From Histomonas meleagridis 2922-C6/04-290x (taxonomy: Eukaryota; Protista; Parabasalia): a DNA stretch of 64,000 bases. The stretch lies in the NCBI GenBank assembly GCA_020184695.1, contig JAANOX010000216.1, positions 1-64,000 of the forward strand, in the 5' to 3' direction. The position numbers and the translations under genes are program-made. The notes under the pieces were generated by a model, which was not told where the DNA came from, made no database searches, and saw only the letters and a program-made list of their open reading frames with translations. How positions within the stretch are numbered: the first letter of the stretch is position 1; each line of letters begins with the position of its first letter. Positions 2,694 through 31,692 of this stretch are shown piece by piece.

Positions 2694-3842
2694 TTATCTT
2701 ATAATTGAAACAGGATAAGTGAGAAAATGTTTTTGAAAGACGGCTAGGCCACCCCAAAATTAAACGATAGAAATCTCAGTCTTATCGGATATGTTCAATT
2801 GCAATTGAAGCAAATAATGTCATATAATCTACTTGATTAAATTCTATAGCACTAACTAATTAATTTTTTACATCATAATAATAGATTTCTAATATCTTCG
2901 TCAATATAAAATCTAATATACATGAATCTAAATTATCATGAAAAAATCATAATATCCAGATGATGTCTTACGAACTGACACTAATAGTATCCTATTTAAA
3001 AAAGATTGTAGACGAATGACATTCACAGGACTGAAGACATTTGACTTCTTCACTGGAATTGTCGTGTTCAATGGAATTAACATTCCACCCCCTGTTTCGA
3101 AACCTGGTTTAAAACATCAAGTGTAAAACATCAAAATCAAAGATATGAATATTACGCTCTGAATACAATGAAACAAATTGAAACAAAGAAAAAGAAATTA
3201 AAATGAATAATTATAAATTAATTAATACATGATTTTTTTTATATAATACTGTTTGAATTTTCTTTAAAAATATTTGACTTCTTTTGTGTTTCATTGTGAT
3301 AAATGTTTGTATTTTCTCCACTATTACCAATATATCTAAAAAGACATCTTATTAAGGTGCATAAAGTAAAAAACAGGTTCTAATTATTCAATTTGAACGG
3401 TAGAAACAGTTCAAACATGGAAATCAAGTTTATCTTCTCATAAATAATTTTTTTTAATATTCATTGTTTCGGTACATGCATATGATCGCAAATCCAAAAA
3501 CAAAAATAAAAAGATAAACAATATGCAAAAAAATTTAAGTCATTTAATCCAAATGGGAAATAATACAAAATGGTTCACAAGGAAGAGAAGTTCAATTTTG
3601 GATAACTTTGCATATCGATAACAAAAATTGTGCATGCAATTATAAGAAAATGCTTTTGGGATGTTGCGTTCGTATAGCTTCCCACTGCAAATGGAAAACG
3701 CCCACATTATACGCATCTTTTTTAATAACTCGAACATTTTTAAAATTATCTCAAAGACAATTTGAAAAAAAAAGTATCGTTTTTTTCTTTACAAAATGCA
3801 CTAAATCGCATTCTGTAGTTGAATGCCATGTAACAAACATAT

Positions 3843-12855: not shown

Positions 12856-13361
12856 TTATGAATTTATTAAAAGTCTTTGAAAATAATTTCTCTATGTAAA
12901 AGTTTCGACTTTAGGTATTTATATTAAATAAGTAAATTGTTTTTGATTTTGATTTGATAATATTTTTAGCACATAAATATCATTTCATCAGTTTTATATT
13001 GAATCCGTTTAAGAGGCAGTAGTTAATCGAAATGTTCTCGACTGGTCCAAAATGACTATTTAGCTTTTTTTGCCCCGCCTCAGGGAATACGTTTGGATTA
13101 GATAAATTTGCTTTACAAAAACTGAGTAAAGACTATTTAATTATTTGGAAATGAATACCTGGGAAATACTTTAATTTCATTTGTCTGATTAAAACCGTTG
13201 TCCTGCTATTCAAATTTAGAAATGTTCAATTTCCAAACATTTTGCGTGTTTTACTTAAGTAAACAATTCATTACATTCAAAATTACCCAAAATGTTCGAT
13301 AGATCTTGTGTGCATAAACATTTTCTTATGAGAAAAATTCAAAAATATTCTACCATCCAAA

Positions 13362-15570
13362 TCAGTTGTATTGATATCCTTGAACATCAATTCCTTTTTG
13401 TTCAAGAAGTAATTTAACTATTTCTGTATGACCATAATAAGATGCATACATAAGTGCTGTTATAAATAATTTAAATAATTTCCAAATATTATTTTGAAAT
13501 ATAAAATTATTCAAATAAATTTTAAATAAAACAATTAAATATCTTTATCATTAATATAAATTCTTTCTTGTTCAAGAAGTAATTTAACTATTTCTGTATG
13601 ACCATATAAAGATGCTAAAATAAGTGCTGTTTCAAATAATATAAATAATTTCCATATATTATTTTGAAATATCAAATTATTAAAATAAATTTTAAATAAA
13701 ACGAATGAATAGATGTAAAATTAATATCAATTCCTTCTTGTTCAAGAAGTAATTTAACTATTTCTATGTAACCACATCTAGATGCTACCATAAGTGCTGT
13801 ATCAAATTCTTTAAATAATTTCCAAATATTATTTTGAAATCCAGAATTATTAAAATAAATTTTATATAAAACAAATAAATATTTTTAGCATTAATATCAA
13901 TTCCTTCTTGTTCAAGAAGTAATTTAACTATTTTTATATGTCCATTTTCAGATGCAAATATAAGTGCTGTTCTAAATAATTTCCAAATATTATTTTGAAA
14001 TATAAAATTATTAAAATAAATTTTAAATAAAACAGATAAATATCTTTAGCATTAATATCAATTCCTTCTTGTTCAAGAAGTAATTTAACTATTTTTATAT
14101 GTCCATTTTCAGATGCATTAATAAGTGCTGTTCTAAATAATTTAAATAATTTCCAAATATTATTTTGAAATATAAAATTATTAAAATAAATTTTAAATAA
14201 AACAAATAAATATCTTTAGCATTAATATCAATTCCTTCTTGTTCAAGAAGTAATTTAACTATTTCTATATAACCTTTTGAAGATGCTACCATAAGTGCTG
14301 TGTTAGCATTAATTCCTATTGCTTTTTGCTTGAATAAGAACTTATACATTTCTGTAGAACTAAAATTAAAATTATTTATAATTTGTAAATAAAATAATTA
14401 AATAAAACGTTAATTAAATTTTTGATACATTAAATTTTTGATATAAAACTATAAATAAATTAATTAAATATCATCATTACTTTTAATCAATATAAATTTA
14501 TTTTTAAGAATATCTTTAAAAAGTTCTTTATTTCTTGCAATTAAAATTAAACTTAAAACATTTTTAGGGATTTTATCTATATTATTATTTACAAAATATT
14601 TAAATAAAAATATATTTCCAGTTTTAATCGAAGTTTTGATAAGTTCCTCAAAATTTTTATTTTCTTTATCAATTAGAAATGAAAGTATTTCAAAATTATA
14701 ATAAAAAACACATTCAATTAATAAATCAGTATGCATAATATTTTCTGATTTATTTTCATAGATGTATTTAAAAATATCATTTCGATGAAATATAATTGCT
14801 GCTTCATATGCACCTTCAAATGTTGAATGATTTTTGTTCACATAAATGAATGATTTCTTCATTCCCACTTGCAACTGCATATTTACCTGTATTTTCTACA
14901 TTAGCACCATTCATAAGTAAATATTTAAAACATTGAACTGAAGAAAAAAATGCTGCATAATCAATTAATGTAACATTTTCTTCATTTATAAATGAACAAC
15001 TTTCATAAAGTGATGGTTCAATTTTTTGATTAAAATCAAAATTTATTTGTGATGATATTTCTTGAAGTTTTTCTACTTCATCATTTCGAATTGTTTTTGC
15101 TATTTCTTTTGGATTATGTACTTCTTTAATTAATTTCTTATGAAGTTCAAAATCATTCTTTGAAAGCTCTTTGTAATTATCTAAAATTGATTGTAGAAAA
15201 TTAGATTTTATATTTTTAATTTCGCTTTTTCTTTTATAGTGAATAAATAACAACGAGTTTATATATCTAATCTTATTTTCTTCAATTATTTTATTTTCAA
15301 TTAATCTTTCGAGAATATAATTCGATTCTTGTGTTTTAAAATTAAAAAGAAAATCTGTAAAAATATTAATGATATTATCTTCTTTCGTTTCATTATTTGT
15401 ATCTTTTTTTTGATTATATAATTCTTCTTCTTTCATTTTAAATAATTTTATATATTCAAAAATTAATTGAATATTTTCATTTCCCATTAAAAAATACGAA
15501 TAAAGTAATTGACAAATTATAAGCTTAAATGAATATGGATATTGATGGGTTTTAATAAATAATGTTGATT
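13362..15570 (-). pseudogene. Locus B: near-duplicate of locus A (DUF3447 + interrupted ankyrin repeats), 5'-truncated, one homopolymer frameshift
   Basis: Sequence about 14340-15571 is nearly identical to about 1395-2580 and identity stops abruptly at about 15571. Six TAL repeats follow; the last ends at TGA 13362-13364. Confidence 0.75.
13380..14301 (-). repeat. 170-bp ankyrin/spacer tandem array
   Basis: Thr codons at 13460, 13630, 13800, 13970, 14131 and 14301 (periods 170, 170, 170, 161, 170). Confidence 0.9.
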
Positions 15571-15883
15571 CTTTGAATTTTTCTCCTCAACTTTGTATAC
15601 AAATGACTTACCTTGAAAGAACCATTATTAACAGCAATAATATTTCTTAGGTTGGCAACCTTATGATTTTACGATTGATTTGATATCCATTGAGCAAACG
15701 TTCGTTTTTTAAAATTAACGTACAATTTCCGACCGTTTATTTATTCGGTGTTACCTTTTTTTGAGACATTGGGTGCTTGTGCTTTTGTATTTTTGTATTT
15801 TTAGAAATTGTGTGTGTTATTTTGGTTAGATATCGTCCAAATTTGGGTGTGAGATTCCTCATATGGCTCACGATTTGGTCTGT

Positions 15884-15891
15884 GACCGTTT
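15884..15891 (+). promoter_or_regulatory. M3-type (Myb-like) core promoter motif GACCGTTT
   Basis: Matches the trichomonad M3 consensus DRCSGYTD and lies 39 nt before ATG 15931. Confidence 0.5.
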
Positions 15892-15930
15892 AATTTCTGA
15901 CGAATTTTTTAAAATAGCAATCGGGAGAAC

Positions 15931-18682
15931 ATGCAAAAACGCGAAACAAATTCAAGTAAAAAAGAAAAAATATTTCCCCAAAACAAAGGACTAGAATTGT
16001 TCTCTGAGCTTGAACAAATCATAATGAATCTAACAGAAGAAAATATAAATTTTTCAGCTATCCATACAACAAAATTATTTGATTTTTCTTTACCATATTC
16101 ATTTAATCTTGTTATAAGTCAATTAATTTATTATGCATTTTTATCACAAAGAAATAAGTGTACTACGTATTTTAAATTTTTTGAAATTATTCAAAAGAAA
16201 GAAGAGGAAAAAATTGGTTCTAAATACAATATTATTGAAATATTTCTGAATTATATCATAAAAAATAATTCTCAAGAAGCTCTATATCTAATTGAGCAAA
16301 TGATTAGACAAAATTTAATTGATGCAAATATTACAAAGATAATTCCTTCAAAATATTTTGCTCATTACAAAACTACAACTGAAAACAAAGAATGGATTAA
16401 TGATCGATTTTTTTCTACTTTTATAAAAAATTTTGAAGAATTATCAAAGAATGATTGGGAGCTTCATCAGCAATATGTTAAAGAAGGACATAATCCAAAT
16501 GAAATTGCAAAAATAATTCGAAATGATGAAATAGAAAAACTTCAAGAAATATCATCACAAATAAATTTTGATTTTAATCAAAAAATTGAACCATCACTTT
16601 ATGAAAGTTGTTCATTTATAAATGAAGAAAATGTTACATTAATTGATTATGCAGCATTTTTTTCTTCAGTTCAATGTTTTAAATATTTACTTATGAATGG
16701 TGCTAATGTAGAAAACACAGGTAAATATGCAGTTGCAGGTGGAAATGAAGAAATTATTCATTTATGTGAACAATGTTGTTCATCATTTAAAGGGTCTTAT
16801 GAAATTGCGATTGAATTTCATCGAAATGATATTTTTCGTTATCTTTATGAAAATAAAATGGATAATTTGTATGAGGTACATGATACAGAACCTCATAGAG
16901 ATTTTCTGAAATATGAAGATTTAATAAAATTTTGTGTTATAAGTGGAAATTATGAAATCCTATCATTTTTAGAAGGAGAAGGAACAAAAATCAATGAATC
17001 TATTATCAATGAATCAGCAAAAATTGGTAATGTATATCTACTCATTCATTTTCTTCATAATAATAAGAAAATACCAAAAAATATTTTAAGTTATACTATT
17101 GAATCAGAGAATGTTGAAGTTGTGGAATATATCATTCTTAAACATAGAAAAGAAATCAATTTTAATTCTGTAAATATTTTTTGTAAAATTTCAATGTTTT
17201 CATATCATATTTAATAATGAATTATTAAGTTATTTAAAACACCTTTGTTATATGTTGCTGAAAAAGGTTACACTGAAATAGTTAAATTACTTCTTGAACA
17301 AGAAGGGATCGATATTAATGCTAAAGACATTTATTGGTTTTATTTAGAATTTATTTTAATAATTTTGGGATATTTCAAAATAATATTTGGAAATTATTTA
17401 AATTATTTAGAACAGCACTTATATTAGCATCTGAAAAAGGTCATACAGAAATAGTTAAATTACTTCTTGAACAAGAAGGAATTGATATTAATGCTAAAGG
17501 TATTTATTTGTTTTATTTAATATTTATTTTAATAATTTTCTATTTCAAAATAATATTTGGAAATTATTTATATTATTTGAAACAGCACTTATAAATGCAT
17601 CTAGATATGGTTACATAGAAATAGTTAAATTACTTCTTGAACAAGAAGGGATCGATATTAATGCTAAAGATATTTATTTGTTTTATTTGAAATTTATTTT
17701 AATAATTTTGGTATGTTTCAAAATAATATTTGGAAATTACAAAAAATATTTAAAACAGCACTTATTTTAACATCTAGAGATGGTAATTTAAAAGTAGTTA
17801 AATTACTTTTGGAACATAAAATAATTGATTTAAATGTTAAAGATGATATTTATTTACTATAATCGATATTATATAATGTAACTTTGGTTTTTAAGCCAAA
17901 ATTTGAAATTTTACTGTATAATTTGAAACACCATTAATTTGGGCCTCAAAATATGGACATAAAGAAATAGTTAAAATACTTCTCGAAAAAGAAGGAACTA
18001 ATATTAATGCCAAAAATTTTTATGTATTTTATTTAAGGTTTAAACTAATTAAAATGGATTTCTTAATGATGTTTGGAAAATATTCATATTGTTTCAAACA
18101 GCACTTATAAAGGCATCTTCAAGTGGATACACTGAAATAGCCAAATTACTTTTAGGAAAAAAAGGAATTGATGTTAATGTTCAAGACATTGTTTTTATGT
18201 TTTGTTTAGAATTTATTTATACAATTTGATATTTTAAGTGTGTATTTGGGTTTTATTTAAAATACTTGAAACACCAATTGTGTTTGCAGCTAAAAATGGT
18301 CACACAGAAATAGTTAAATTACTTCTTGAACAAGAAGGAATTGATATTAATGCTAAAGATAAATTTTTGTTAATTTATTTGATAATTATTTTAACGATTT
18401 GATATTTTAAAATAATATTTGGAATTTACTTAAAATATTTTGTACAGCACTCATGAAAGCATCGAGAAATGGTTATGCTGAAATAGTTAAATTACTTCTT
18501 GAACAAAAAGGTATTAATATTAAAGCTAAAACTATTCACTAAATTTATTTAAAATTCAATTAAATGATATAATATTTCAAAACAATATTTGGAAATTATT
18601 GAAATTATTTGAAACAGCACTTGATTTAGCATCTTCAAAAGGTAATCAAAAAATTGTTGCGTTATTTCATGAATTTTTTTAA
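15931..18682 (+). CDS. Locus C: DUF3447 + 9 ankyrin repeats, each preceded by a non-canonical intervening spacer; ends in a C-cap repeat
   Basis: An intact 427-aa first ORF with DUF3447 motifs is followed by open 30-codon repeats starting at 17239, 17412, 17582, 17755, 17928, 18098, 18271 and 18444. The final TALDLASSKGNQKIVALFHEFF* runs 18614-18682. The joined gene model is inferred. Confidence 0.75.
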
Positions 18683-18834
18683 AAAATTTACTGTCAATAA
18701 AAACATTATTGAATAAAATCGTATTTCCATGGCGAAAACGGTCGCAAGAAGGTTTTTTTCCAGAAAAAACGAATCCTAACATCTAACTAAATGTGATTTA
18801 TAGGTAAATTTTAGTCTAAAATATTATATTATAA

Positions 18835-18922
18835 CAATTAAAATTTATATCAATTCCTTTTTATTGAAGAAGTGATTTAACTATTTCTGTGTGCCATTAT
18901 AAGATGCTCTAATAAGTGCTGT
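18835..18922 (-). pseudogene. Single decayed ankyrin repeat unit
   Basis: TALIRASYNG-HTEIVKSLLQ*KGIDIN, with one frameshift and a stop. Confidence 0.7.
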
Positions 18923-19390
18923 ATTTGTTCATCGTTGGTTATTGGGCTATTTTGATGGATAGCTCTGAATGCCTCCTTTGTTGCGTCTGCCTGAAAGAAT
19001 CTGTTGAGCATGTACTTGACGTAGTTATCGAAGTCCAGTGTACTTCTTGATGATTTCCTTGCATTCATCTTCGGTAGAAATCTCACCGAGTGATGTAAGG
19101 CACGAGTTAAGTTCGTATGGCTCGAGCGTCTTGCTCTTGTCCTTGTCGAAGAAGTAGAATGTTTTAAGGAATTCGTTAAGTTGTTCTTCAGAGATTTCGA
19201 TACCTTTAGCATCTGCAATTGCTTTGTCTGCTTCTTGGATTAATGTCTTAATATGTGATAATGTGTTGCCGAATAATTGTGAGATAGCTGATGGTGAGTT
19301 CTCGACTTCAAATTCGAGTGAATCCTTTTCAAGTTCTTCGTATGATGGAAGGATTTCTTCGACTTTGTCCTTTTGCTTCTGGAAGCGACT
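18923..19390 (-). pseudogene. Alpha-actinin C-terminal fragment (spectrin-repeat end + EF-hands)
   Basis: Reads ...KGIEISEEQLNEFLKTFYFFDKDKSKTLEPYELNSCLTSLGEISTEDECKEIIKKYT / LDFDNYVKYMLNRFFQADATKEAFRAIHQNSPITNDEQ. There is no start codon, a frameshift near 19040, and GC-richer codon usage than the flanks. Confidence 0.7.
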
Positions 19391-19476
19391 AATTAATTAA
19401 TTCTTTTCTTTAAGCACTTATCTGTATAATTCATTTAAATCAAAAAATAACTCAAAAAGATAATTGATTGCGTTGT

Positions 19477-21513
19477 TTATGTAAATGCTATGAATACGCA
19501 AACTGCTTTTCCGTTCTCTCTCTTTGCGCACAGTGGATAAGCACCGTCTCCATAACCACTGAATGTAATAGCGCCTCCAGGAACCACTCTCATTAGTGGT
19601 GCGTCTCTATCTTCAAGTAAAGATGTGTATAAAATGGAAAACTCTTGTTTGATTTTTTGATCTTCCTGATTTGCCATAAAAAATCCATCTCTTACCACAT
19701 ATTTTCCGAACCTATTCAATGCCTCCTTATCTTCAGCCATTACAACGTCATTAGTATTAAAGAAATGTGACTGTGTAATTAGCATTGACATTGCAATATC
19801 ACTACCAACCAATCCGGACACTTCAAATCCAGGCATATCATCCACAGGCGTTATCTTGTTTCTCTCAATATTCTCATGATTTCCAACAACTTTCTTATAT
19901 AAGTTTTCATCTGGGATTTCCTTGAGCACTTTTTTGTAATCCTTATGAACTAATATGAGTGAATTCACAACCGAATCTCTGTATTGAATTTTTGCCACCC
20001 ATTTACCCCCTAAACAATTCAGTACTTTAGGCGACTTTTCTTCAGTGGCCCATAAGTCGCCAGGGTCGATTCCAAATATTGTTTCACCATCAACCACGTC
20101 AACCTCATTATAATCCCTTGGAATTTCTTTCTTCCATTTCGTCACGGGGATTTCATCAACATTTTTACGTTTATCTTTATCAATAGCTTCAACAATTCCA
20201 AGCCATAAAAGCTCATCTTTTCGAAGACAAGAACCGCTATGATGTGATGAAGATAACCTCAAACTTGATAAGTCTGACATGTTATCTGGCAGATTTATCA
20301 TTGCTGCATGGATAACATTATTCTCATTAGTGGTGACGAACCTTGTGTTTTGGGACTTATAAAAGATCGGGGCTCCAATTTTGGTTAATATTTCGATCTC
20401 ATCAACTTCTTTGTAATCCTTTGATTTAAATTCTTTTGGTACTTTTCCAAACCCTTTTACGACTTTATAATTACAATACGGCTTTGCTGGGAGATACATA
20501 TCGTATTTATTTTCTTCTTTTTTCATATCAAATGCTTCTGGATATTTCGGAATATATTGAACATAATTAAGTTCTAATGGTGGTTTGTATTTATATTGAT
20601 TACTAAGTTCAAATTGGATGTCATTAACGTTAATAATTTTCCCAAGTTTATAATTATATCCCGAAATAACATGATAATGTTGATGTTGTTCAACAATGGC
20701 TTCTTTAAATACAATTGCAATGCGATCATTGCTAATGATTGAGATACAATACACTTCGGATTTAATGGCAATGTTAGTAATTCCATGAAATAGCTCATGC
20801 GTATTCGGATTATAAAGCGTAAACTCAAGATCGGCATCGGAGTTATGCGGAAACATCATATTGGATGGCCTGTTAATGGAAAGAAGACCTTTTGTTGGTA
20901 ATGAAATTGTTGTGAATCCAAAATATTCTGCTGACTCATCAATATGTTGAATAATCAGTTCGTCTGACTTAGGAACGAAAAGGAAAAGATGGTGGTCATT
21001 AGTAATATAGTATTTACCATCAAATTGTTGAGGAATAATAATTGGAATATTTTCATTGTCATGATTACGAGAAGAGAATTTGGAATTACAGTATATGCGT
21101 TCAGGTGGAATTGGTTTGCCACTGGATGACATGGCTGTGAGATTGATCGGCTTGATTTCGGTTTCGGTTATTAATAAAGTTTGATGTGATTTGGATAAAA
21201 TGTAATAATTGCCTTCGAAGTTGATGAGGGATAAATCGTAATTACTATCAACGTTCTCTTGAAATGTGGATAATATTGTATCAGTATCACGATATAAAAG
21301 AAATGCATTAACTCCGTTACAACGAATCCAAAGAAGGTTTAGGTCTTGAGATAATTGAATTTGCAAATTAGAATATGATTGTTGAAGAAAATCATACTTG
21401 GAAAGTAATGGGGACTGTTGAGCATCGAAGAAAGCAACATTTTTGCTTTTGATGAATTGTACGTCTTCACCATTTTCAATGATTTCGCCAAATGGAGTTG
21501 CGTATTTCTGCAT
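19477..21513 (-). CDS. Hypothetical protein; C-terminal SGYGDGAYP motif reminiscent of DUF4241
   Basis: About 680-aa ORF with first ATG at 21513 (track start is TTG). It ends GGAITFSGYGDGAYPLCAKRENGKAVCVFIAFT. Confidence 0.6.
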   Translation of the reverse strand: MQKYATPFGEIIENGEDVQFIKSKNVAFFDAQQSPLLSKYDFLQQSYSNLQIQLSQDLNLLWIRCNGVNAFLLYRDTDTILSTFQENVDSNYDLSLINFEGNYYILSKSHQTLLITETEIKPINLTAMSSSGKPIPPERIYCNSKFSSRNHDNENIPIIIPQQFDGKYYITNDHHLFLFVPKSDELIIQHIDESAEYFGFTTISLPTKGLLSINRPSNMMFPHNSDADLEFTLYNPNTHELFHGITNIAIKSEVYCISIISNDRIAIVFKEAIVEQHQHYHVISGYNYKLGKIINVNDIQFELSNQYKYKPPLELNYVQYIPKYPEAFDMKKEENKYDMYLPAKPYCNYKVVKGFGKVPKEFKSKDYKEVDEIEILTKIGAPIFYKSQNTRFVTTNENNVIHAAMINLPDNMSDLSSLRLSSSHHSGSCLRKDELLWLGIVEAIDKDKRKNVDEIPVTKWKKEIPRDYNEVDVVDGETIFGIDPGDLWATEEKSPKVLNCLGGKWVAKIQYRDSVVNSLILVHKDYKKVLKEIPDENLYKKVVGNHENIERNKITPVDDMPGFEVSGLVGSDIAMSMLITQSHFFNTNDVVMAEDKEALNRFGKYVVRDGFFMANQEDQKIKQEFSILYTSLLEDRDAPLMRVVPGGAITFSGYGDGAYPLCAKRENGKAVCVFIAFT

Positions 21514-21899
21514 TTGGAAAAGTGAAGTCAGCAAATACAAATTTAAACGGCTGTGAACTCACTTTTGAACGCAATCAGCTGACCAGATATCAATTCAAAA
21601 ATTTACCATCAACGATTTGTACAGTTAAACCCTCTCTATATTTATCATTATTTTAGAAATGTATAAAAGCTTTTGGTAATTGTCTGGGTGGATAAGAAAG
21701 CAGAACTTAAAATATATGGAATAATTATTATTAATTATTAATTTTTATCAAGATCAAAAACTTTGTTAGCTTGAGTGCTAGGCTACATTGGCCTTTTGAA
21801 ATTGGTTGATATTTATTCTATTTTGAATTCTATTTTGACAAATATGTGGATTTGTTCCAAATTATGAAATGTCATGTGAAATAGATATTAGACCAATAA

Positions 21900-23402
21900 A
21901 TGTCTGTTCTTTTAAGCGGGCCACTAATTAAAAGACATTTACCAGAAAATGAAGATCCTCCAACAGAAACAGATCGCGTTACTACAATAAGTTTAGAAGA
22001 GTTTCTTCAAGATAATGGATCTTTTGAATCCGATGAACAAAAAGAACGACGTTCTGAAGTTTTATTCAAGTTAGAAGATTTGGTCAATCAGTTTGTCCGG
22101 GAAGTTTACGTGAAAAATTCTAATGATATTTCTGGAGCACAAAATTATTATGGAAAATTAATTGCTTTTGGTTCTTTTCGATATGACGTATCGAGCCCCG
22201 AATCAGACATTGATTCTTTGTGTATTGTCCCACAATTTGTCAAAAGAACTGATTTCTTTACAATTTTTTACAGACTTTTATCAACAAATCAACTTGTTAA
22301 AAACCTTGTCAAAATCGAAAACGCGTATGTTCCAATCATTACCATGCAATTTCAAGGGATAGATGTTGATATTTCATTTGCACAACTTGCATTACCAAAT
22401 ATTGATCCTGAAATGGACATTAGTCTTCTTGACGATGATAACATTCTTTCTAATGTTGATGCCCAATCTATGCGATCTCTTAATGGTGTTCGTGTTAGTA
22501 ATATGATTGTTCGTCTTGTTGATGATAAGGCAAATTTTGCACTATTTCTTCGATTTATTCGTATGTGGGCCAAAAAGCGTGGTGTATATGGTAATGTTTA
22601 TGGGTATTTAGGTGGAGTTAATTGTGCATTATTATGTGCATTTATATGCCAAAGATATCCAACTGCACTTCCATCTAAACTTGTCCTAATGTTCTTTAAG
22701 GACTTAATGTCATGGAATTGGCCTGATCCAATCTACATAAATACCCCTGCAATCGGACCTTTGCCATCTTGGGATAACAATCAAGGTTCACCGGGGAAGA
22801 ACGATAAGATGCCGATCATAACCCCCGCGTATCCTGCGATGAACTCAATGGCCAAAGCTACCAAGTCCACTCGAGATAGGATGGTACACGAATTTAAGAG
22901 AGGTTATAAGTATACATTAAAAGTATTCCAAGAAGGTGAAGAATGGAAATGTTTAATTCAGCCCACGCACTTTTTCGTAAACTGCAGAAAATATGTACGA
23001 GTTCAAGTTTGGGCTTCAACTGCAGAAGAACTTAATAAATGGGTACAAACGGTAGAGGCGCAGATAAGAAAGCTAACACTAGCATTAGAATCGGTAAGAT
23101 TCATGAATGCTGTTTATGCATATCCGAAACATTTCGATCGACAAGATGATGAAGGTCATGAATTCTCAAGCAATTTCTTCCTTGGATTGGAATATTGTAT
23201 TCCAAAGGAAGAAAGTGTGGAAAGAAGAATTGACATATCGGAATATGCACAAAAGTTCATCGATGATATGTATGACTCGCCAAACAGAACACCACAGATG
23301 GGGCTGTTCATGCATTTGATTGATAGAATGTTGATGGTTCCATATGTGTTTGAAGATGGAAGACCAGTCAAAAAACACAGAAAACAGAAAACTGCACCTT
23401 AA
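21900..23402 (+). CDS. PAP: Canonical poly(A) polymerase
   Basis: FGSFR...SDIDSLC nucleotidyltransferase motif, third Asp in GIDVDISF, YGYLGGVNCA and MPIITPAYPAMNS. Confidence 0.93.
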   Translation: MSVLLSGPLIKRHLPENEDPPTETDRVTTISLEEFLQDNGSFESDEQKERRSEVLFKLEDLVNQFVREVYVKNSNDISGAQNYYGKLIAFGSFRYDVSSPESDIDSLCIVPQFVKRTDFFTIFYRLLSTNQLVKNLVKIENAYVPIITMQFQGIDVDISFAQLALPNIDPEMDISLLDDDNILSNVDAQSMRSLNGVRVSNMIVRLVDDKANFALFLRFIRMWAKKRGVYGNVYGYLGGVNCALLCAFICQRYPTALPSKLVLMFFKDLMSWNWPDPIYINTPAIGPLPSWDNNQGSPGKNDKMPIITPAYPAMNSMAKATKSTRDRMVHEFKRGYKYTLKVFQEGEEWKCLIQPTHFFVNCRKYVRVQVWASTAEELNKWVQTVEAQIRKLTLALESVRFMNAVYAYPKHFDRQDDEGHEFSSNFFLGLEYCIPKEESVERRIDISEYAQKFIDDMYDSPNRTPQMGLFMHLIDRMLMVPYVFEDGRPVKKHRKQKTAP

Positions 23403-24182
23403 ATAAATAATAAATTGTTTCGCTAAATAAATTTCTTTTATTCTTAATTTCATATAAAAATACTTTAAATTAATTGTAAAAATGTTTTGTTCAGTATTTC
23501 TTAATTAATTAAAAAGTATATTTAAATTAAAAATTTTATAATAAATTAATTTTTTATAATATTCTATTAATTATATCCCAGTCGGCTTTCTTGTGAGAAA
23601 ATTAACTTTCATTAAGTATTTGCGATTGGTATTGGATTCAATTCTTTTTTGTTCAATTTGTAAGTGAACTATTTTTATTTACTTTAAAATAGAGAGTTCT
23701 TCACTCAAAACTACTTTCATTTTTTCAACCAACATGTAATGGTGTTAAATGTTCGATATCAACTTTTACTTTTTATCCACATTAAATTCCTCAATAAAAT
23801 ATTTCACTTATGAAATAAAACTTTCAACATGTACATGTGTAATCGCTGCTTCATGGAAAAAAAATCAATTTCTTTATTAGATATTTTTATTATATATTTT
23901 ATGATTAGAATTCATAACATTTTTCACACTTATGACTCATTAAATGGATGTAAAAGAAACCCTCAATGTATAACAACATAGACAATAATCAAAATCAATA
24001 CTTTCCGGTTTACAACAATTAGTTAAAATCCACTCACATATTTAATATCAATGAAATTTTATAGCAATATGTAGAAATTTTTCACATTTTTTTCCCCTGC
24101 GTTTATAAAATATGAATATTTTATTAATTTGGTGATCACCAAAAAAATGTTTATTAAGGAGTTATCCTTTATCACTTAAAAT

Positions 24183-25734
24183 TTAAACCAAAGGGACTCG
24201 GGAAACGCATCTGATTAAATCCATTGTTGTTTGGTCCTTTTTCATTAAGTAATTGTTTTATTTCTCTGAGACCTAACTGTTGAGCAATTTCAATATGAAG
24301 TGCTGTTTCAAGTGATTAAAACATATTCTAAATTATTAAAACATATTATAAATTATTCAAATGAATATCTTTTGCATTCACATCAATTCCTTCTTTATCT
24401 AAAAGTAATTTTACTATTTCTATATTATTATTTCTAACTGCTATATGAAGTGCTGTTTCAAATTATTAAAACATATTCCAAATTATTAAAACATATATCA
24501 AATTATTCAAATGAATATTTTTTGCATTAACATCAATTCCTTCATTATCTAAAAGTAATTTTACTATTTCTATATTTCTTGATTTAACTGAATATGGTAA
24601 AATTGTATTTGGAATTTGTTGACTTTGTATATCACTTTCTATTATGAATGTATTTCCTTTTGATGCTATTTCTTCAATAATTTCATTATTCATTTTCATT
24701 CCTTCTTTTACTAAAAACATTAAGATTTCATAATTATTAAATTCCATACATTTTTTTCCAAGATATATTAAATTTTCTTCACTTAAATTACAATTATCTT
24801 GACTTTCGATATTGGAATTCGATTTTTTAAAAGAAAATGATGAAGATGACTTTTGTTTATCATTGGAAATTTTTCCAATTTTATTTTCATAAAGATACGA
24901 AAAATTTCATTTTGATGAAATTCTATCGCTGTTTCATATGCGTTTTCAAATGATGAATTGTTTTGTTCGCATAAATGAATAATTTCTAAGTTTCCACCTG
25001 CAATTGCATATTTAGGTGTATTTTTGATATTCGAATTATTTAACAACAAATATTTAAAACATTTAATCGAACCAAAAAATGCGCAATAATCAATTAATGA
25101 AACATTTTCAGTATTAACAAATGAGCATCTTTCATAAAGTGATGGTTCAATTCTTTGATTAAAATTAAAACCATTTTGTGATGATATTTCTTGAAGTTTT
25201 TCTAAATCATCATTTCGAAGCACTTTCGCAATTTCTGATGGATTAACTCCTTCTTTTACATATTGAATATGAAGCTTCAAAGCATCTTTTGATAATTTAT
25301 GAGGTTCTGCCCATTTGTTCATTAATTCATTCATTTTTTCTTTTGTTTTAAATTGAGAAAAATATAATTTGCTCATGCTGTTTACGGTAGATGGTTCAGG
25401 TATTTCTTCTTCGATCATCTTTTCAAGAAGGAAATATGATTCTTGATTTTCTATTCCAAGCAAATATTCACAAAATATTTGCACAAGATTAGCTTCAGTT
25501 AAACTTTTGTTTTTTGCTTTTTCTTCTTCTTTTGCTTTTAATGTAAATAAATATTTAACATATATATTTTCATTATTATGTTGAGAAACAAAAGCTGAGT
25601 ATATAAATCTGGAAATAAGATAGTTAAATGTATAAGGTAGATTATCAACAAATAAATTAATTGTTGCTTGAACAGATGTTTCAAAATTTTTTTCGTTGAG
25701 ATTGAAGACAATGGATTCTAATGATTTCGATCAT
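24183..25734 (-). pseudogene. Locus G: DUF3447 + 2 ankyrin units separated by 60-nt spacers of the 20-mer type; frameshifted
   Basis: ORFs 24783-25484 and 24466-24747 are joined by a 1-nt frameshift near 24897. Thr codons are at 24456 and 24306, and the last unit TALHIEIAQQLG...VPLV* ends at 24183. The start position is approximate. Confidence 0.65.
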
Positions 25735-26873
25735 TAACAAAATAATGGTCGAAAAGTTTTTGTAAGACGATAAAAATATCAAATACTTTACAGCATGCTG
25801 AACAACGTTAAAATATTTTGTTTAATGGCCACTTTTTGAATGCGTATCTATCGGTGAAATGGGGTGCCTTTTTCGCTTTTCAAATGTTCCAATAAGATAA
25901 AATTTGTCGTAAACAAGAGCATCCAACCAATATTAAGTTGATGACATGCTTAAACAGATCACAAAATGCTTAGGGCTGGATGAATCAAAATACAGATCTT
26001 CTTGAAAAATCAATACAAGAAATAAAAGAAAGTTTTGAAAAAGAATACCAAAGGATAAATGACTCAAGGAAAAATTCAAGATCGTGTTTTTCATCAATTT
26101 GGTGATCTATTGAAACAATTTGGAAAAGAAATTGAATAAATATTATTAATTCCACCCGAAAGACAGCAACTGCATGCTTCCCTTTCATCAAAAATTCAAA
26201 GGCCTACAAAAATCAATATTTCTAAAACCACAACACCATCTTCAGATTTTAAGAAGATTTCTCTAAAATCATTTCACAAATACAAGCAGGTGGCATAAAC
26301 ACAAATGGAATGACAATGATTGCAGAGAGAGCAATGTTTTATAAAATCATGATCAAGTTTTCTTTAAGCGTTGAAACAAGAATTAAAAATAAATTAAGCG
26401 GAACAATAGGCACAATAGCAAAAGGAGAAGTTGTAACACATTTGCATAAGAAACTTGTTTAGATCAGTAATCGATAAAATACGAAATTAATCTAAGGTAA
26501 AAATCAGGATCGTTTTTGTGTTATCGGGTATGTTGATTTATGATTTGTTCATTGTTTTTTCTCCTATTGAAAACACTAAATAAATAAGTTCGTTTGTTTC
26601 TTTGAAGTATTATTTGTAATCTTCTTGCTGTAAACATCAGAAAAAGTTTGAAGCTTTTCATACAAATCACAAATTAACGTACATTAACGATAACAACCGT
26701 ATAAAACGATTAAAAAAATTTGAAAAAAAGAAGATAATTATCCTCAAATTTACTAAAAACTTGCTAAAGAATACAGAAAAAAGACAAGCTCTTGAATGAA
26801 AAGGAGTTATACATTTTATAAATTTTGTCAATAATTTCAAAATCATTTAAAAGAAAACAACAATTTTTAATAG

Positions 26874-27437
26874 TTAATGAATAAGTGTTATCCAAGAAAT
26901 GACTGTGTACAATAGGCCACATGGAAACAACCCAAGTAATTTTCGATCTTCTGAAATATGTGAAGCAATGAATCTTGAAACAGAATGAATTGACCATACT
27001 AAGGTCAATGGAACCGTAATAACTTTTATAATGGTCCATGACAAAATTGCAGTGATCAATGAACCGCATGCAATTGGGAATAAGCAATAACCTATTGCAC
27101 ATATTGCTTGGAAAAATGAAACTGTGCTCCCAAGAAGCATGAAATTTATTGAAACAATTGCACCACCAATTGTAAGAATAATGAAAACACCAGTAAATAA
27201 TAAAGTAGTTTGTCCTACCGGTGCTGTTATGGCGAGAACTGTTGACAGTATCAAGCAAATAAATAATGGACCCCAAAGATCCCAATTTCTTAAAGCGTTT
27301 TCAGATGATGCCTTTGGATTCAAAACAACCAATGTTTTACTCTTGATTCCGTTAAGATCTTTCATTAAAGTTTCCCAAACAGTTTCTGTTAAGAGTTCTG
27401 AGTCAACATTTTGGTAAACAAGTGGTTCTTGTTCCAT
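26874..27437 (-). CDS. Yip1-domain protein (YIPF6-like)
   Basis: ETVWETLMKDL...VLNPK...LRNWDLWGPLFICLIL followed by several TM helices. Confidence 0.88.
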   Translation of the reverse strand: MEQEPLVYQNVDSELLTETVWETLMKDLNGIKSKTLVVLNPKASSENALRNWDLWGPLFICLILSTVLAITAPVGQTTLLFTGVFIILTIGGAIVSINFMLLGSTVSFFQAICAIGYCLFPIACGSLITAILSWTIIKVITVPLTLVWSIHSVSRFIASHISEDRKLLGLFPCGLLYTVISWITLIH

Positions 27438-27561
27438 TTTTCAATTTTATTTGGCTAAAATAAACCGTTTATGTTCAACACTTTTATTTACATTTTTTTC
27501 TGTGATTTACAACTTATCGTTACCAAGCAATTTGTCACTTTTTGAAATACGTTAGTTCAGC

Positions 27562-30500
27562 ATGTCGGGATATACTGGACTACGTCTTGAACCAGTAACA
27601 GCGCTTGGTATAAATATCCTTGATAACAAAACAATACACTGGAATGGGTCAAGACAATTTTTTTATCCTGTCGGTATTCACATTCAACAATATCAATTAG
27701 AAACTAATCAAACACAATTTTTATTTTCAGAACGATTCGAGCAAAACAGTGCCGAAACAATCAAAATTTGTGATGTATGTATTTTTGGAAATGGTCAATT
27801 CATAGCAATATCAGAAGTATTTCGTCCAAAGCATGGAATTCTTTCAATATATGACACTGAAACTCAAATGCTACACACTCGTTTGAGGCATGACAAAGTG
27901 AATGAATTCGTTTCTCTTACATTCTCATATGAAGATGGAATGATTGCAGCTATCGGAAAAGGAGAAGAAGAAAATAAAGTTTTTGTTTGGAAGATGGGAC
28001 GTCAGGTTGGTCTTGCAGCTACATTTCAAGTTTCTAAGGATATTACATCGATTTGTTTTGATCCTCAAAATTCTTTTCGTCTTCTTCTTTTTAGCAAAGA
28101 ACAAATATTAATTGTTCTCATTGACACACCAGATCGTACACAGACTGTTATTGACACCAATGATATAAGAAATTATAATTGTTATTCATTTGTTCCTTCA
28201 ATTCGTAACCTTTTACTTGTTTCATCTAATAACACGCTCATAACAATTTTAGGTGAAACTGTTGTTGACATGCAAGAACTCATTTCAACAAATATTGATC
28301 AAATCGAATCAGTGAGAAATTTTGTTTTTCTTATCTCAAAAAACGTAATTCACTGTTTTAAAGCATCCCAAAGTTATCCTTACTTAGAGTTTATCGGTCC
28401 TTTAAATCTTCAAGCAGATATAATAAATGAATTTTCCCCATCACCAGATGGAGATTTGGCAATTGTTTTATACAATAACTCATTTACGTATTTACTTGAT
28501 TTTAACATTGCCCAAAAGTACATTCGACAAAGAAATGAAATGAAGAATAAAAATGGAGTATCATTAGATAGCGGCCGTATTTATTCTTTTGATGACTTTT
28601 TGGAAATTAAAACTAAGAATGATAATCAATTTCTTGACATATATGAAATCGAACAATACATTGGTTTATTAACTCCATTACCAATGTGTTTTCAAATGGG
28701 CCCGATTACAGCAATTGCAAAATGTCCAAGAAAGCCATTAATAGCAACATGTGGGAAAGATTTAACATTAATGATTTGGAATTTAGCTAAAAAAACCGTT
28801 CTTTCGACCGTTAGGCTCTCGGAGACCGTTAACAGTTGTAGCTTTCATCCATCAGGAGATTTATTAGCTGTAGGGAAATCGAACAGTTTATCATTATATT
28901 CATTATCATTTAATTCTCTTATACTTAATCATAAATGGGAACCATTATCATGTACATGTGTCAGTTTTTCAAATGGAGGTCATCTTTTAGCAGTTGGTTC
29001 TGTAATGATAAAAGTAATTTCCACTTATACAAATAAAACGGTAGCATCATTACGAGGCCATAATTTATCCATCAAATCTATTGCATGGGCTAATAATGAT
29101 TCATTTTTTATCTCTGCAGGATTAGATGGTAATATATTTAAATGGTCTGCGAAATCATGGGAACGTACATGTGAAATAACGCAGCCATATCAATTTATAA
29201 ATGCTATTTTAACGACACCAAACATACATGAAGAAGAAACGACTTCGAATAATTATAATATTTTAGCATTAACTTCAAACAGTTTAATTTATGATAAAGA
29301 AAACTCAAACGGTCGCAGCCCTAACAAAAAGTGCAAATTAACCGCCATGTGTTTACCTGTCAATTTTTCTATCGTTACTGGTGATCAAAGAGGTAATGTT
29401 CAAGTAATCCCTTATCCATTATTACCATTTGAAAAAGATAATCCATTTCATATTGGTATTGAAGTCTCAGTTCATACATTACCTGTCAATTATATAATGC
29501 ATAATAATGGACAAACATTATATTCAACATCAGAAGATTCATCAATTTTTATATTTAATATAATTCAACCACATCAAATGGTATTAACAGCACCAGTATC
29601 AATAGCATTATCACGAGAAGAACAAAGTTTTTTAGTGGATAAAGAAATATTCACCGAAAAACAAGAAACGATTTTACATTTACGTGAAATGTTAAATTTA
29701 CATCGATCACAATTTAAGACATCGAATAATAAATTAAATGAAGAACAAAATAAAGAAATCGAGAAATATAAAAATAAATGGAAAATGACTTTGTCATCAT
29801 TAAAGAAACAATTGACAGCACTTTCCAATGAGAAAGAAGAACAAGAAAGAAAAGCAACGCAAATAATAATCGAAAGTGAAAATGAACATAATGAAAAGAT
29901 GAAAAAAGTTAAAGAATTATATGAAAAAAAATTGGCAGAACAAACTCAAGCTTCTGCTGAACTAATGAAAGAGAAAATTAGTATTCAAGCTGATTACGAA
30001 GATAAAATACATAAAATGACTGAAGAGTTTAAAGCGAAATTAGTCGAACGGAAAGAATCAGCTAAAAGACAATTAGAAATTCAGGCTTCTGATAATGTAG
30101 AAGCTGAAAAGGAATTTAAGCAAGTAGAAAGATTACAAGTCGAAGAAAAAATTACATTGCAACATGAACATGAATTAGAAATGGAAAATTTTAAACAAAA
30201 ATTCGAACAAGAAATTAATAATTTAAATAACGAAATTGATATCGTACGAACAGACTTAGTCAATCACCAAGATGCTTATGATGGTAACATAGAACAAATT
30301 TCGTCAATGAAATCAAATATTGTTAGTATAACTAATGAAAATAAGTTACTTGAACAAAAGAAAAGAGTTTTGACTGAAAAAACAAATCAAATACAAAACG
30401 ATCTTTTAGGTCGAAATGAACGAGTGACACATCAAACAACAAATTTGCTTGAGCTTAAATCTAAAAATGATGAGTTACAAAAATGGCGTGCAGTTATGGA

Positions 30501-31245
30501 CTTCAGATTATCGGAGCTTAAAACTCAAGTTGAACCAAATTCACAAAATATCGAAAATCTTAGGAAACAAATTTCGGATAATGAAATTCTATTGCGGCAA
30601 ATGAAACAAATCAATACTAAAGACTCACAACAACTCGAGAAAATGGAGAACAAAATCAACGATTTATATAACAACATCATAAAAACCGAAAATCAAATTC
30701 AAAAATTTGAATCGACGATAAATATTTTCAAAAACAAAATTCGTTCTTTATATACTGAAGTTAAACCCGAGAATTGGGTAACAGAAATTGAACAATTTTA
30801 TAAGAACTTCATTTCTAACATCGAAGTCGAAATTAATGATAATGAGATTGAAATCGATGATGATAATAATATGTTAAAAGAAACTATTGACGAGTTTGAT
30901 CGACATAAAGATACTCTCTCCAATAAAATCATCAAGTTAAGGGTTAAAGTTGAGGATAACGTCGAAAATTCGGGATTATCATTCTTGAAGCAAATCGACA
31001 AAAATGAAGAATTGATAAACGAATTGGCGAAGTTAAGAAAAGAAAACAGAAATCTGAAGTCGAACTTGCACTTGGCGCAGACAGAAATTAATACATTGCT
31101 GAGACAATGTTCACATGAATCGAAATCGTTGGAAACTAAGGTGAAGACTTTGTTTAAGTCCTCGAATATAATTCAGCCCGTACCACAAATTCAAAAGAGA
31201 ACAACAAAAACGGGCGTACCTGTTACTGTGGAACATTTTACATAG
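27562..31245 (+). CDS. CFAP57: WD40 + coiled-coil cilia/flagella protein, CFAP57/WDR65-like
   Basis: GPITAIAKCPRKPLIATCGKDLTLMIWN and CSFHPSGDLLAVG WD repeats, followed by a long C-terminal coiled coil. Confidence 0.75.
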   Translation: MSGYTGLRLEPVTALGINILDNKTIHWNGSRQFFYPVGIHIQQYQLETNQTQFLFSERFEQNSAETIKICDVCIFGNGQFIAISEVFRPKHGILSIYDTETQMLHTRLRHDKVNEFVSLTFSYEDGMIAAIGKGEEENKVFVWKMGRQVGLAATFQVSKDITSICFDPQNSFRLLLFSKEQILIVLIDTPDRTQTVIDTNDIRNYNCYSFVPSIRNLLLVSSNNTLITILGETVVDMQELISTNIDQIESVRNFVFLISKNVIHCFKASQSYPYLEFIGPLNLQADIINEFSPSPDGDLAIVLYNNSFTYLLDFNIAQKYIRQRNEMKNKNGVSLDSGRIYSFDDFLEIKTKNDNQFLDIYEIEQYIGLLTPLPMCFQMGPITAIAKCPRKPLIATCGKDLTLMIWNLAKKTVLSTVRLSETVNSCSFHPSGDLLAVGKSNSLSLYSLSFNSLILNHKWEPLSCTCVSFSNGGHLLAVGSVMIKVISTYTNKTVASLRGHNLSIKSIAWANNDSFFISAGLDGNIFKWSAKSWERTCEITQPYQFINAILTTPNIHEEETTSNNYNILALTSNSLIYDKENSNGRSPNKKCKLTAMCLPVNFSIVTGDQRGNVQVIPYPLLPFEKDNPFHIGIEVSVHTLPVNYIMHNNGQTLYSTSEDSSIFIFNIIQPHQMVLTAPVSIALSREEQSFLVDKEIFTEKQETILHLREMLNLHRSQFKTSNNKLNEEQNKEIEKYKNKWKMTLSSLKKQLTALSNEKEEQERKATQIIIESENEHNEKMKKVKELYEKKLAEQTQASAELMKEKISIQADYEDKIHKMTEEFKAKLVERKESAKRQLEIQASDNVEAEKEFKQVERLQVEEKITLQHEHELEMENFKQKFEQEINNLNNEIDIVRTDLVNHQDAYDGNIEQISSMKSNIVSITNENKLLEQKKRVLTEKTNQIQNDLLGRNERVTHQTTNLLELKSKNDELQKWRAVMDFRLSELKTQVEPNSQNIENLRKQISDNEILLRQMKQINTKDSQQLEKMENKINDLYNNIIKTENQIQKFESTINIFKNKIRSLYTEVKPENWVTEIEQFYKNFISNIEVEINDNEIEIDDDNNMLKETIDEFDRHKDTLSNKIIKLRVKVEDNVENSGLSFLKQIDKNEELINELAKLRKENRNLKSNLHLAQTEINTLLRQCSHESKSLETKVKTLFKSSNIIQPVPQIQKRTTKTGVPVTVEHFT

Positions 31246-31692
31246 ATTTGTTTGTATAAAATTTTGTATATTATTTTTTTAATGATAAAATCAAATTGCG
31301 AACATAAGAATTCCATTTAATTTTGTGCTATTTGGAATCTCATGTTATGTATGATTTAAATCAAAACAAAAGTTTTTTTGACGATATGATTAAATGAATG
31401 AAAAAACATCGTATTTCCATTCAAAAACTATAACGGTCGACAAGAATAAAAGCAACCGTTTAATTTCTTATGAATCGTCTCAAAATATATTCGTAAATAT
31501 TTCATATATCTCTGTGTGAATCTGACTTTGCTTTGCTTACGCTTTGAAAAAAATAAAATTGAAAACCATCAAAAAAAAAGTCAATTTTTTTTAACTAAAA
31601 ATCTTATTAAATATATAAAGAAAATATTAGAGAAAAGAAAAAGATGTTATTAATTTCATAACATTTTTATATAATTATCAATAATTTTTTTA

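Follow-up and report, generated by a model that had tools for sequence, protein, structure and literature searches.

The stretch of DNA analysed here (the window) comprises 64,000 nucleotides (nt) of contig JAANOX010000216.1 from Histomonas meleagridis. It carries seven ankyrin-repeat genes, loci A to G, in which short T-rich inserts lie between the repeats; locus C, at 15931-18682 on the forward strand, is the type example. Locus C begins with an open reading frame (ORF) at 15931-17214 which encodes 427 amino acids and has Pfam matches to DUF3447 (E 2.6e-8) and to Ank families including Ank_2 (1e-6). Downstream of this ORF, an nhmmer profile finds eight open ankyrin segments of 30 codons, which start at 17239, 17412, 17582, 17755, 17928, 18098, 18271 and 18444. 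They are followed by a cap (18614-18682) which ends in ...KIVALFHEFF and the stop codon at 18682. Tandem Repeats Finder (TRF) reports a 173-nt period in the array, with 8 copies and 71% matches. A first-pass annotation of this DNA had described the intact DUF3447 ORF, the eight open segments and the capping repeat, and all are borne out by the ORF, Pfam and nhmmer results. The predicted protein belongs with the DUF3447-family ankyrins: it combines Pfam DUF3447 and Ank matches, repeats of 33-34 residues, the D-x-x-G-x-T hairpin and a capping repeat. Its nearest named relatives are the H. meleagridis 'cask-interacting protein' paralogues. Locus C is best read as a single protein-coding gene for about 718 amino acids, with a DUF3447/ankyrin N-terminal domain and nine ankyrin repeats. 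An isolated, frameshifted ankyrin segment is found just 3' of its stop codon (18839-18922, reverse strand).

The ankyrin segments and the cap are each preceded by a spacer. Counted from the D-like codon to the T codon, the nine spacers measure 63, 83, 80, 83, 83, 80, 83, 83 and 80 nt, exactly the lengths given in the first pass. The spacers at 17845-17927 and 18188-18270 have stops in the upstream and downstream frames alike, as had also been claimed, and read-through or a single frameshift is therefore impossible. The 80-nt length is maintained between copies with about 30% nucleotide difference, and likewise in paralogues on another contig and a gut-metagenome scaffold (L002 and L001, below); TRF detects 20-nt periods within the spacers; and TTTGG, the sole G-rich spot of the spacers, lies at a constant distance from the next repeat. 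These features are unlike those of a single intron. The spacers were tested for the form 80 = 4 x (17 + 3).

Each spacer resolves into three or four tandem 20-nt modules, each consisting of a 17-nt T-rich insert and one codon. The first pass had placed one intervening sequence in every repeat; there are instead three or four separate inserts with micro-exons between them. The insert consensus is ATTTnTTTnnATTATTT (A-T-T-T-n-T-T-T-n-n-A-T-T-A-T-T-T). The consensus 80-nt spacer reads, after the D codon, ATTTATTTGTTTTATTT, AAA, ATTTATTTTAATAATTT, TAT, ATTTCAAAATAATATTT, GGA, AATTATTTAAATTATTT, GAA-ACA. Without its inserts it encodes K-Y-G-E between D and T, which fits the canonical ankyrin hairpin D-x-x-G-x-T. 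The F/L that had been read as a codon ahead of x-T-A/P-L is actually the TTT end of the last insert. Micro-exons between inserts are 3 nt long, sometimes 6 nt, and encode four or five hairpin residues. The 63-nt spacers hold three inserts and four codons. The 83-nt spacers have one additional codon, which is either joined to the upstream exon (GAT 17845-47, ATT 18188-90, AAA 18361-63) or forms part of a 6-nt micro-exon (TGGGAT, TGGTAT). The arrays are likely to have arisen by tandem duplication of an insert-plus-codon module; this explains both the 20-nt periodicity and why processing would restore the frame every time.

The whole of locus C parses into 35 inserts, every one of 17 nt, and 26 micro-exons. 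Removal of the 35 inserts in silico leaves an ORF of 2157 nt (718 amino acids) with no internal stop and with the original stop codon. Of the eight junctions with four inserts (1-8), seven then have the hairpin glycine; the three-insert junction 0 (loop N-N-N-K) lacks it. In junction 4, inserts 1-3 are diverged and the last insert alone passes the threshold of the position weight matrix (PWM). The parse is as follows; all features are on the forward strand, and the record numbers refer to the RNA-run contigs discussed below.

15931-17175, + strand: exon 1, N-terminal domain with DUF3447 and ankyrin-like repeats, 415 codons ending ...S-V-N (ORF and Pfam, RNA contig record 15)
17176-17235, + strand: junction 0 (63-nt spacer minus its last codon), inserts 17176-17192, 17196-17212 and 17219-17235, micro-exons AAT 17193-17195 and AATAAT 17213-17218 (RNA record 20)
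17236-17328, + strand: exon 2, AAA and 30 ankyrin codons, K-TPLLYVAEKG...NAKD
17329-17408, + strand: junction 1, inserts 17329-45, 17349-65, 17372-88 and 17392-408, micro-exons AGA 17346-48, TGGGAT 17366-71 and GGA 17389-91, loop R-W-D-G-R (PWM parse)
17409-17501, + strand: exon 3, AGA and 30 codons
17502-17578, + strand: junction 2, inserts 17502-18, 17522-38, 17542-58 and 17562-78, micro-exons AAT, TCT and GGA, loop N-S-G-E (PWM parse and RNA joint)
17579-17671, + strand: exon 4, GAA and 30 codons
17672-17751, + strand: junction 3, inserts 17672-88, 17692-708, 17715-31 and 17735-51, micro-exons GAA, TGGTAT and GGA, loop E-W-Y-G-K (PWM parse)
17752-17847, + strand: exon 5, AAA, 30 codons and GAT (RNA record 7)
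17848-17924, + strand: junction 4, inserts 17848-64, 17868-84, 17888-904 and 17908-24, micro-exons GAT, TGG and GAA, loop D-D-W-E-E, the only four-insert loop without Gly
17925-18017, + strand: exon 6, GAA and 30 codons
18018-18094, + strand: junction 5, inserts 18018-34, 18038-54, 18058-74 and 18078-94, micro-exons AAG, TGG and GGA, loop K-W-G-Q (RNA record 22)
18095-18190, + strand: exon 7, CAA, 30 codons and ATT
18191-18267, + strand: junction 6, inserts 18191-207, 18211-27, 18231-47 and 18251-67, micro-exons AGA, GAT and GGG, loop I-R-D-G-E (RNA joint 18190->18268)
18268-18363, + strand: exon 8, GAA, 30 codons and AAA
18364-18440, + strand: junction 7, inserts 18364-80, 18384-400, 18404-20 and 18424-40, micro-exons GAT, GAT and GGA, loop K-D-D-G-C (PWM parse)
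18441-18533, + strand: exon 9, TGT and 30 codons
18534-18610, + strand: junction 8, inserts 18534-50, 18554-70, 18574-90 and 18594-610, micro-exons AAA, AAT and GGA, loop K-N-G-E (PWM parse)
18611-18682, + strand: exon 10, C-terminal capping repeat and stop codon (RNA records 8 and 24)

The register of the modules was examined in 35 distinct 80-nt spacers, which provide 140 inserts and 140 retained codons. Triplets at spacer positions 18-20, 38-40, 58-60 and 78-80 include no stops among 140, versus 63 of 140 one base upstream, and their G+C content (0.35) is the highest of any register. The retained residues follow a pattern: K/G/D/N, then Y/G/W/D, then G (29 of 35), then D/E/Q; no other part of the spacer varies as much as the x codons. 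G makes up 31% of the retained triplets versus 4% of the inserts, which are 58% T. Conservation within the inserts is concentrated at the ends (A1 0.86, A14 0.94, T15-17 0.92-0.96) and extends to T2-4. The first base is A in 120 inserts, G in 11 and T in 9 (A/G 94%), with ATTT, AATT and ATAT as the commonest starts. At the other end, 135 (96%) have T as the last base and 120 finish in TTT. C does not exceed 6% at any position except position 5 (15%). Across the 64-kb window, 212 of 223 insert-like 17-mers with a high PWM score lie inside the arrays. Two other ways of reading the spacer were rejected: its 3' half cannot be coding ('NNIWKLFKLF'), as many copies have TGG-TAA there, and 'ATT TAT' cannot be exonic between a 51-nt and a 17-nt intron, as several copies have ATT-TGA or ATT-TAA.

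The first pass had reported the same architecture in loci A, B and D-G, and this holds. The seven genes of the window together have 74 ankyrin segments; of their 65 measurable spacers, 42 are exactly 80 nt long and 56 have the form 17k+3m. Such recurrence of segments and spacers is far beyond chance. Modules of 17+3 are also found in L002, another H. meleagridis contig, and in L001, a gut-metagenome scaffold. The L002 paralogues keep them even though their N-terminal domains are just ~50% identical. All ten arrays of the subfamily observed in DNA (loci A-G, L001 and L002) bear inserts. The window has a G+C content of 27.5% and is intron-poor; the long ORFs of the other genes are uninterrupted, reaching 1708 amino acids. 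The annotated intron of a neighbouring gene (789 amino acids over 2489 nt, with a 119-nt gap = 7x17) was inspected and has no insert modules.

Such arrays could in principle be decaying or non-coding: nothing would be removed, the product would stop at 17214, and the rest would be an ankyrin-derived tandem repeat, either pseudogene or satellite. The public annotation, which has no gene here and cuts paralogues at the first spacer, agrees with this, as do 1-nt frameshifts in the N-terminal parts of genes A and B, three frameshifted segments in locus F, and a ratio of nonsynonymous to synonymous differences (pN/pS) between repeats near 0.7-0.9. However, 70 of the 74 segments are open (the four frameshifted ones being the three in locus F and the fragment at 18839-18922), and they keep the ankyrin structural residues at ~30% nucleotide divergence. 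Segment lengths shift in multiples of three only, whereas the spacers have stops in every frame; in locus E (33 units), all segments are open, with lengths of solely 87, 90 or 93 nt, and the spacers have stops in every frame. The arrays close with a proper capping repeat and stop codon, and the RNA contigs depart from the genome at insert edges. Decay is very improbable on this evidence. The first-pass view is supported that this is one gene and that it depends on the removal of sequence whose ends are neither GT-AG nor AT-AC.

Several of the other arrays have peculiarities. In locus F (57611-61014, forward strand), a single 20-nt module fills the gaps between near-identical ankyrin cassettes in 3, 4 or 10 copies; it is ATATGTTTTAATAATTT followed by GGA or sometimes GAA, AAA or AGA. 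The spacers thus vary by whole 20-nt units (60, 80, 200 nt), and the predicted loops after removal range from G-D up to nine glycines and D. Cassettes 57843, 59651 and 60364 have frameshifts of 1-2 nt. Two '233-nt spacers' of locus E (33937-34169 and 34940-35172, reverse strand) each hide a divergent ankyrin segment, for example ...KALEKGNVKTIQNLLTQGLININTKD, which was missed by the nhmmer profile; each is in fact two junctions. At 13971-14041 (reverse strand) there is a 71-nt spacer whose fourth insert is shortened to 8 nt, and here the frame would not be restored. The N-terminal parts of genes A (~1993, reverse strand) and B (~14830, reverse strand) each shift frame where five A's stand in a row; either the genes are pseudogenes, or the long-read assembly has homopolymer errors there. 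The possibility that the N-terminal domains of paralogues also contain 17-nt inserts was rejected, as their frame breaks are 1-nt changes in A-runs. Outside the ankyrin arrays, an 18/36-nt tandem repeat (52597-52967, unit CAAATACATTTACTAAAT, ~20 copies) lies in the ORF at 51651-53465; a K-S-N-x-F-x repeat much like it is present in the gene between two L002 ankyrin genes (~2700-3500).

The RNA data are Logan assembler contigs, not reads, from four 2023 runs labelled 'RNA?', where the label is a guess. Contig depths are uninformative, as conserved helices draw thousands of paralogue contigs; break points were used instead. Contigs from the four runs break at nine predicted insert edges of locus C. 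Zero-mismatch contigs depart from the genome at the predicted edges 17176, 17212, 17752 and 17847. Record 15 matches 17115-17176 (62 nt) exactly and then departs; exon 1 ends at 17175, and the extra base is accounted for by the next micro-exon, which begins with the same A. Record 7 (run X1, 168 nt) matches 17752-17847 without mismatch, which is exactly exon 5, and its other 72 letters do not come from the contiguous genome. Each of the four runs has a joint 18190->18268, whose shorter side measures 37-55 letters, at the exact predicted outer edges of junction 6. Runs X2 and X3 share a joint 17502->17579, which falls at the predicted outer edges of junction 2; its left end at 17502 is what the parse predicts, because the first letter of the micro-exon AAT equals base 17502. 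Records 8 and 24 cover 18611 and 18629, respectively, onward into the 3' flank. A further candidate, 17677->17752, was rejected as a clean splice; it is better explained by a paralogue with an I-Y-G-K loop.

Two contigs look like partly processed RNA from which the upstream inserts have gone first. Record 20 has 29 foreign letters and then matches the genome from 17212, retaining the third insert of junction 0; the match begins one base before AATAAT (17213) because the preceding micro-exon ends in T. In junction 5, the match of record 22 begins at 18035, immediately past the first insert, and inserts two to four are still present; with just four letters ahead of the match, this record is weak evidence. 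Abundant paralogue contigs read ...NAKD-K-Y-G-K-TAL..., encoded by GAT AAA TAT GGA AAA ACA GCA CTT, and their loop codons AAA TAT GGA are identical to genomic micro-exons.

These break points bear on the size of the unit removed. If each 63-83-nt spacer were one non-canonical intron, 0-2 residues would be left between D and T, and the triplets would be relics or binding sites. The joints 18190->18268 and 17502->17579 would also fit such an intron if nothing lies between their sides, and the frame can be kept with fixed offsets of (3,3) or (0,3). Against this, a left end at 17501 would be expected for the second joint, and 17502 was found. The boundaries within spacers at 17212 and 18035 would be unexplained, as would the glycine of the third triplet (29/35), the absence of stops and the occurrence of variable, purine-rich triplets within T-rich surroundings. 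If whole spacers were removed, every repeat would also lose its hairpin glycine, which the structure requires. When fixed offsets were tried, stops restricted coding to ≤5 nt at the 5' end and ≤8 nt at the 3' end, no consistent signal emerged, and the loop glycine was again lost. Because of the lost glycine and the boundaries inside spacers, the whole spacer is not supported as the unit, and its removal in one piece is very unlikely. Removal of separate 17-nt inserts fits the same break points, and the mature message very probably consists of the large exons joined to the micro-exons.

The joined contigs might also come from DNA that never had inserts, either continuous-loop paralogues or retro-copies, or from elimination in some cells of the kind known for the internal eliminated sequences (IESs) of ciliates. 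In the runs, continuous canonical loops do occur in thousands of paralogue contigs; the runs are only guessed to be RNA, and some genomic DNA is apparent in them (record 9, 15542-15930). However, the zero-mismatch contigs over unique exons (17752-17847, 96 nt; 17115-17176, 62 nt) cannot be diverged paralogues. The foreign letters of record 20 adjoin a stretch with one insert, which would not be the case for a clean insert-free copy. All ten arrays known from DNA carry inserts, and the share of array words is more complete in 2021 DNA runs (0.63-0.64) than in the RNA runs (0.27-0.41). We know of no DNA elimination in parabasalids. An origin in insert-free DNA is thus considered unlikely. Among the mechanisms raised in the first pass, DNA-level excision finds no support; removal from RNA is favoured over ribosomal bypass by the RNA-run contigs.

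Bypass would leave the inserts in the mRNA, with the ribosome hopping over each 17-nt insert or shifting frame. Known bypass elements include the 50-nt gap of T4 gene 60 and the 'byps' of Magnusiomyces mitochondria; they need matched codons, and the gap stays in the mRNA. Like these, the Histomonas inserts are short non-coding sequences in ORFs which conventional gene callers cannot cross. They are also of fixed length, U-rich and located in an otherwise intron-poor genome, and some upstream frames meet a stop right after the take-off position (I-stop), as is reportedly the case in T4 gene 60. However, there are no matched take-off and landing codons: the codons flanking the inserts (GAT, AAA, TAT, GGA...) differ at most junctions. 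There is no conserved hairpin, 35 consecutive hops with single codons between would be very inefficient, and RNA-run contigs break at the predicted insert edges and already lack inserts there. Ribosomal bypass is accordingly rated highly improbable.

The inserts also lack at least one defining feature of each class of removable sequence considered, namely U2- and U12-type introns, euglenid introns, bulge-helix-bulge (BHB) introns, bypass elements and IESs. No GT-AG or AT-AC ends fit them. The 140 inserts have neither the trichomonad 5' motif (GYAYGY/GTWYWD) nor the trichomonad 3' end, an AG fused to an ACTAAC branch motif. The first pass had noted that the parabasalid 3' motif is missing, and ACTAAC is indeed absent from both strands of 17100-18700. 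U12-type AT-AC introns have ATATCCTT at the 5' end, a TCCTTAAC branch site and AC at the 3' end; the insert consensus ATTTnTTTnnATTATTT does not conform, and its last base is T. RNAalifold predicts no conserved fold in 26 aligned spacers (0 pairs, 0 kcal/mol), and single-sequence folds are mutually inconsistent, with z-scores between -0.02 and -2.0; the spacers thus have neither euglenid-type pairing nor the BHB structure cut by tRNA endonuclease. The insert boundaries are A/G...T and not TA...TA as in ciliate-type IESs.

Comparison with the introns of related organisms is instructive. According to the H. meleagridis genome paper, introns are scarce and no gene has more than one; ankyrin genes go unmentioned there (PMC8529796). 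Of the two strains which that paper covers, the attenuated one is, by our reading, the source of the DNA analysed here. In Trichomonas vaginalis, each of the 63 validated introns has GT/AG ends; the 5' motif is extended, and the 3' motif is 12 nt long and of the ACTAACACACAG type. These introns include type A and a type B of 23-25 nt, and no transcript has multiple introns (PMC12316389). The Histomonas inserts resemble trichomonad spliceosomal introns in that they occur in the same phylum and in an intron-poor genome, are very short and would be removed precisely; a few trichomonad introns are likewise found in ankyrin-repeat genes. They differ in that 86% start with A and 96% end with T, ACTAAC is lacking, and there are 35 per gene, 3 nt apart.

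Ultra-short spliceosomal introns occur in Stentor and other heterotrich ciliates (~15-16 nt) and in the chlorarachniophyte nucleomorph (18-21 nt); these have GT-AG ends and ordinary exons. The Histomonas inserts are similarly tiny, near-invariant in length, AT-rich and very numerous, but they lack GT-AG, are arranged in tandem and are separated by single-codon exons; we know of no other tandem arrays of ultra-short introns with single-codon exons. The nonconventional introns of euglenids have no GT-AG borders, their ends are brought together by base pairing, and their length is variable. The likeness here is an excavate protist, the lack of GT-AG and a proposed removal independent of canonical signals; unlike euglenid introns, the inserts have no conserved pairing and are fixed at 17 nt. 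The IESs of Paramecium are TA-bounded, 26 nt or longer, and cut from the DNA in a separate somatic nucleus. They share with the Histomonas inserts a short, AT-rich sequence of constrained length which interrupts coding sequence and, in Histomonas, would likewise be excised precisely; in contrast, the seemingly partly processed Histomonas contigs point to RNA, and Histomonas has, to our knowledge, no nuclear dualism. Finally, 3-nt microexons and recursive splicing in animals and plants involve single-codon exons and stepwise intron removal, as is proposed here; they are rare, sit beside long GT-AG introns and need enhancers, whereas the Histomonas micro-exons are set in tandem 20-nt modules.

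The following account best combines these observations. The codons of the beta-hairpin loop (D-x-x-G-x-T) are parted by 17-nt T-rich inserts in every repeat. The inserts would leave the transcript singly, apparently upstream ones first, and the outcome would be an mRNA which encodes a normal ankyrin loop. The anatomy of the arrays, their coding register and the contig breaks at insert edges are demonstrated; from these we infer that removal takes place at the level of RNA, in this order, and that an enzymatic machinery suited to such units exists. As the inserts are without trichomonad splice signals, this machinery would be either a strongly derived, recursive spliceosomal reaction which can cope with 17-nt introns and 3-nt exons, or another cut-and-join system which recognises the insert itself. 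Stepwise, non-canonical excision of 17-nt micro-introns from RNA by such an undescribed or highly derived machinery is, taken as a whole, the likelier explanation, with appreciable room for doubt.

Several points weigh against this account. Insert-like sequence need not be removed: the 17-mer ATTCCTTCAAAATATTT at 16342-16358 has a PWM score of 11.2, yet it lies in frame within exon 1, forms part of the conserved protein and is evidently kept, so that PWM score or sequence alone does not define an insert. In locus C, several other micro-exon registers are also free of stops when shifted, so the absence of stops alone does not discriminate. Nine of the 65 spacer lengths are off the 17k+3m form; at least four are true exceptions (71, 81, 81 and 82 nt), and the remainder lie in locus F, where some segment ends set by the hidden Markov model are offset. 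Locus F would yield odd poly-Gly loops. The pN/pS between repeats is high (0.67-0.89), and dN/dS between repeats is uninformative. As for the RNA, the data are assembler contigs of a guessed run type. The sequence spanning the key joints was not read, and the retention of micro-exons in RNA is therefore deduced from break points and sequence statistics. Contigs with inserts and contigs lacking them coexist, those with inserts being of similar depth, and contigs do not separate mature mRNA from precursor or DNA. Record 9 (run X2, depth 31, zero mismatch) covers 15542-15930, 390 nt upstream of the ATG, as would be expected if the leader were unusually long or if DNA had been carried over into the 'RNA?' runs; together with the depth of the insert-bearing contigs, it makes carry-over likely. 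Finally, no mechanism is known that would handle tandem 3-nt exons or 17-nt inserts bounded by A/G...T.

A bolder proposal, offered tentatively, is that Histomonas has a dedicated RNA excision system without GT-AG rules, either non-spliceosomal or a radically re-tooled spliceosome, which takes the 17-nt U-rich element as its unit and removes tandem copies one codon apart. Loops would then vary by module slippage, and the system might generate diversity of binding surfaces in a large unannotated family. Because a 20-nt module nets one codon, slippage could lengthen or shorten hairpin loops without a frameshift. The loops of 2 to 9 glycines between near-identical cassettes in locus F would be an example.

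The first pass had predicted that standard ORF callers would fail on such genes, and they do. In the deposited annotation (GCA_020184695.1), there is no gene between 12.9 and 19.0 kb of the contig. Just four genes are annotated in the 19.5 kb from 12900 to 32402, and the ankyrin genes B, C and D are all missing; the annotation of a paralogue, P0009, ends at its first insert. No spliced full-length proteins are present in the protein collection, where matches are genomic or metagenomic ORFs cut at the first insert, and the exact 427-amino-acid product is not on record. Literature searches found no description of such inserts.

Should they be excised from RNA, few known intervening sequences would be as short as these inserts, and none described earlier would have fixed A/G...T ends or stand in tandem around single-codon exons. 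This would challenge what splicing machinery is thought to require for exon and intron definition, in a lineage thought to hold just a few dozen, rigidly GT-AG introns. Pipelines which drop non-canonical junctions, such as that used for T. vaginalis (PMC12316389), would never detect such inserts. The 64-kb window contains seven genes of this kind; in the part examined, 12.9-32.4 kb, the annotation has none of them. A large ankyrin family of an important poultry pathogen is absent from, or truncated in, the public annotation and the proteomics databases derived from it, and a parasite-specific step of RNA processing would be a possible drug target.

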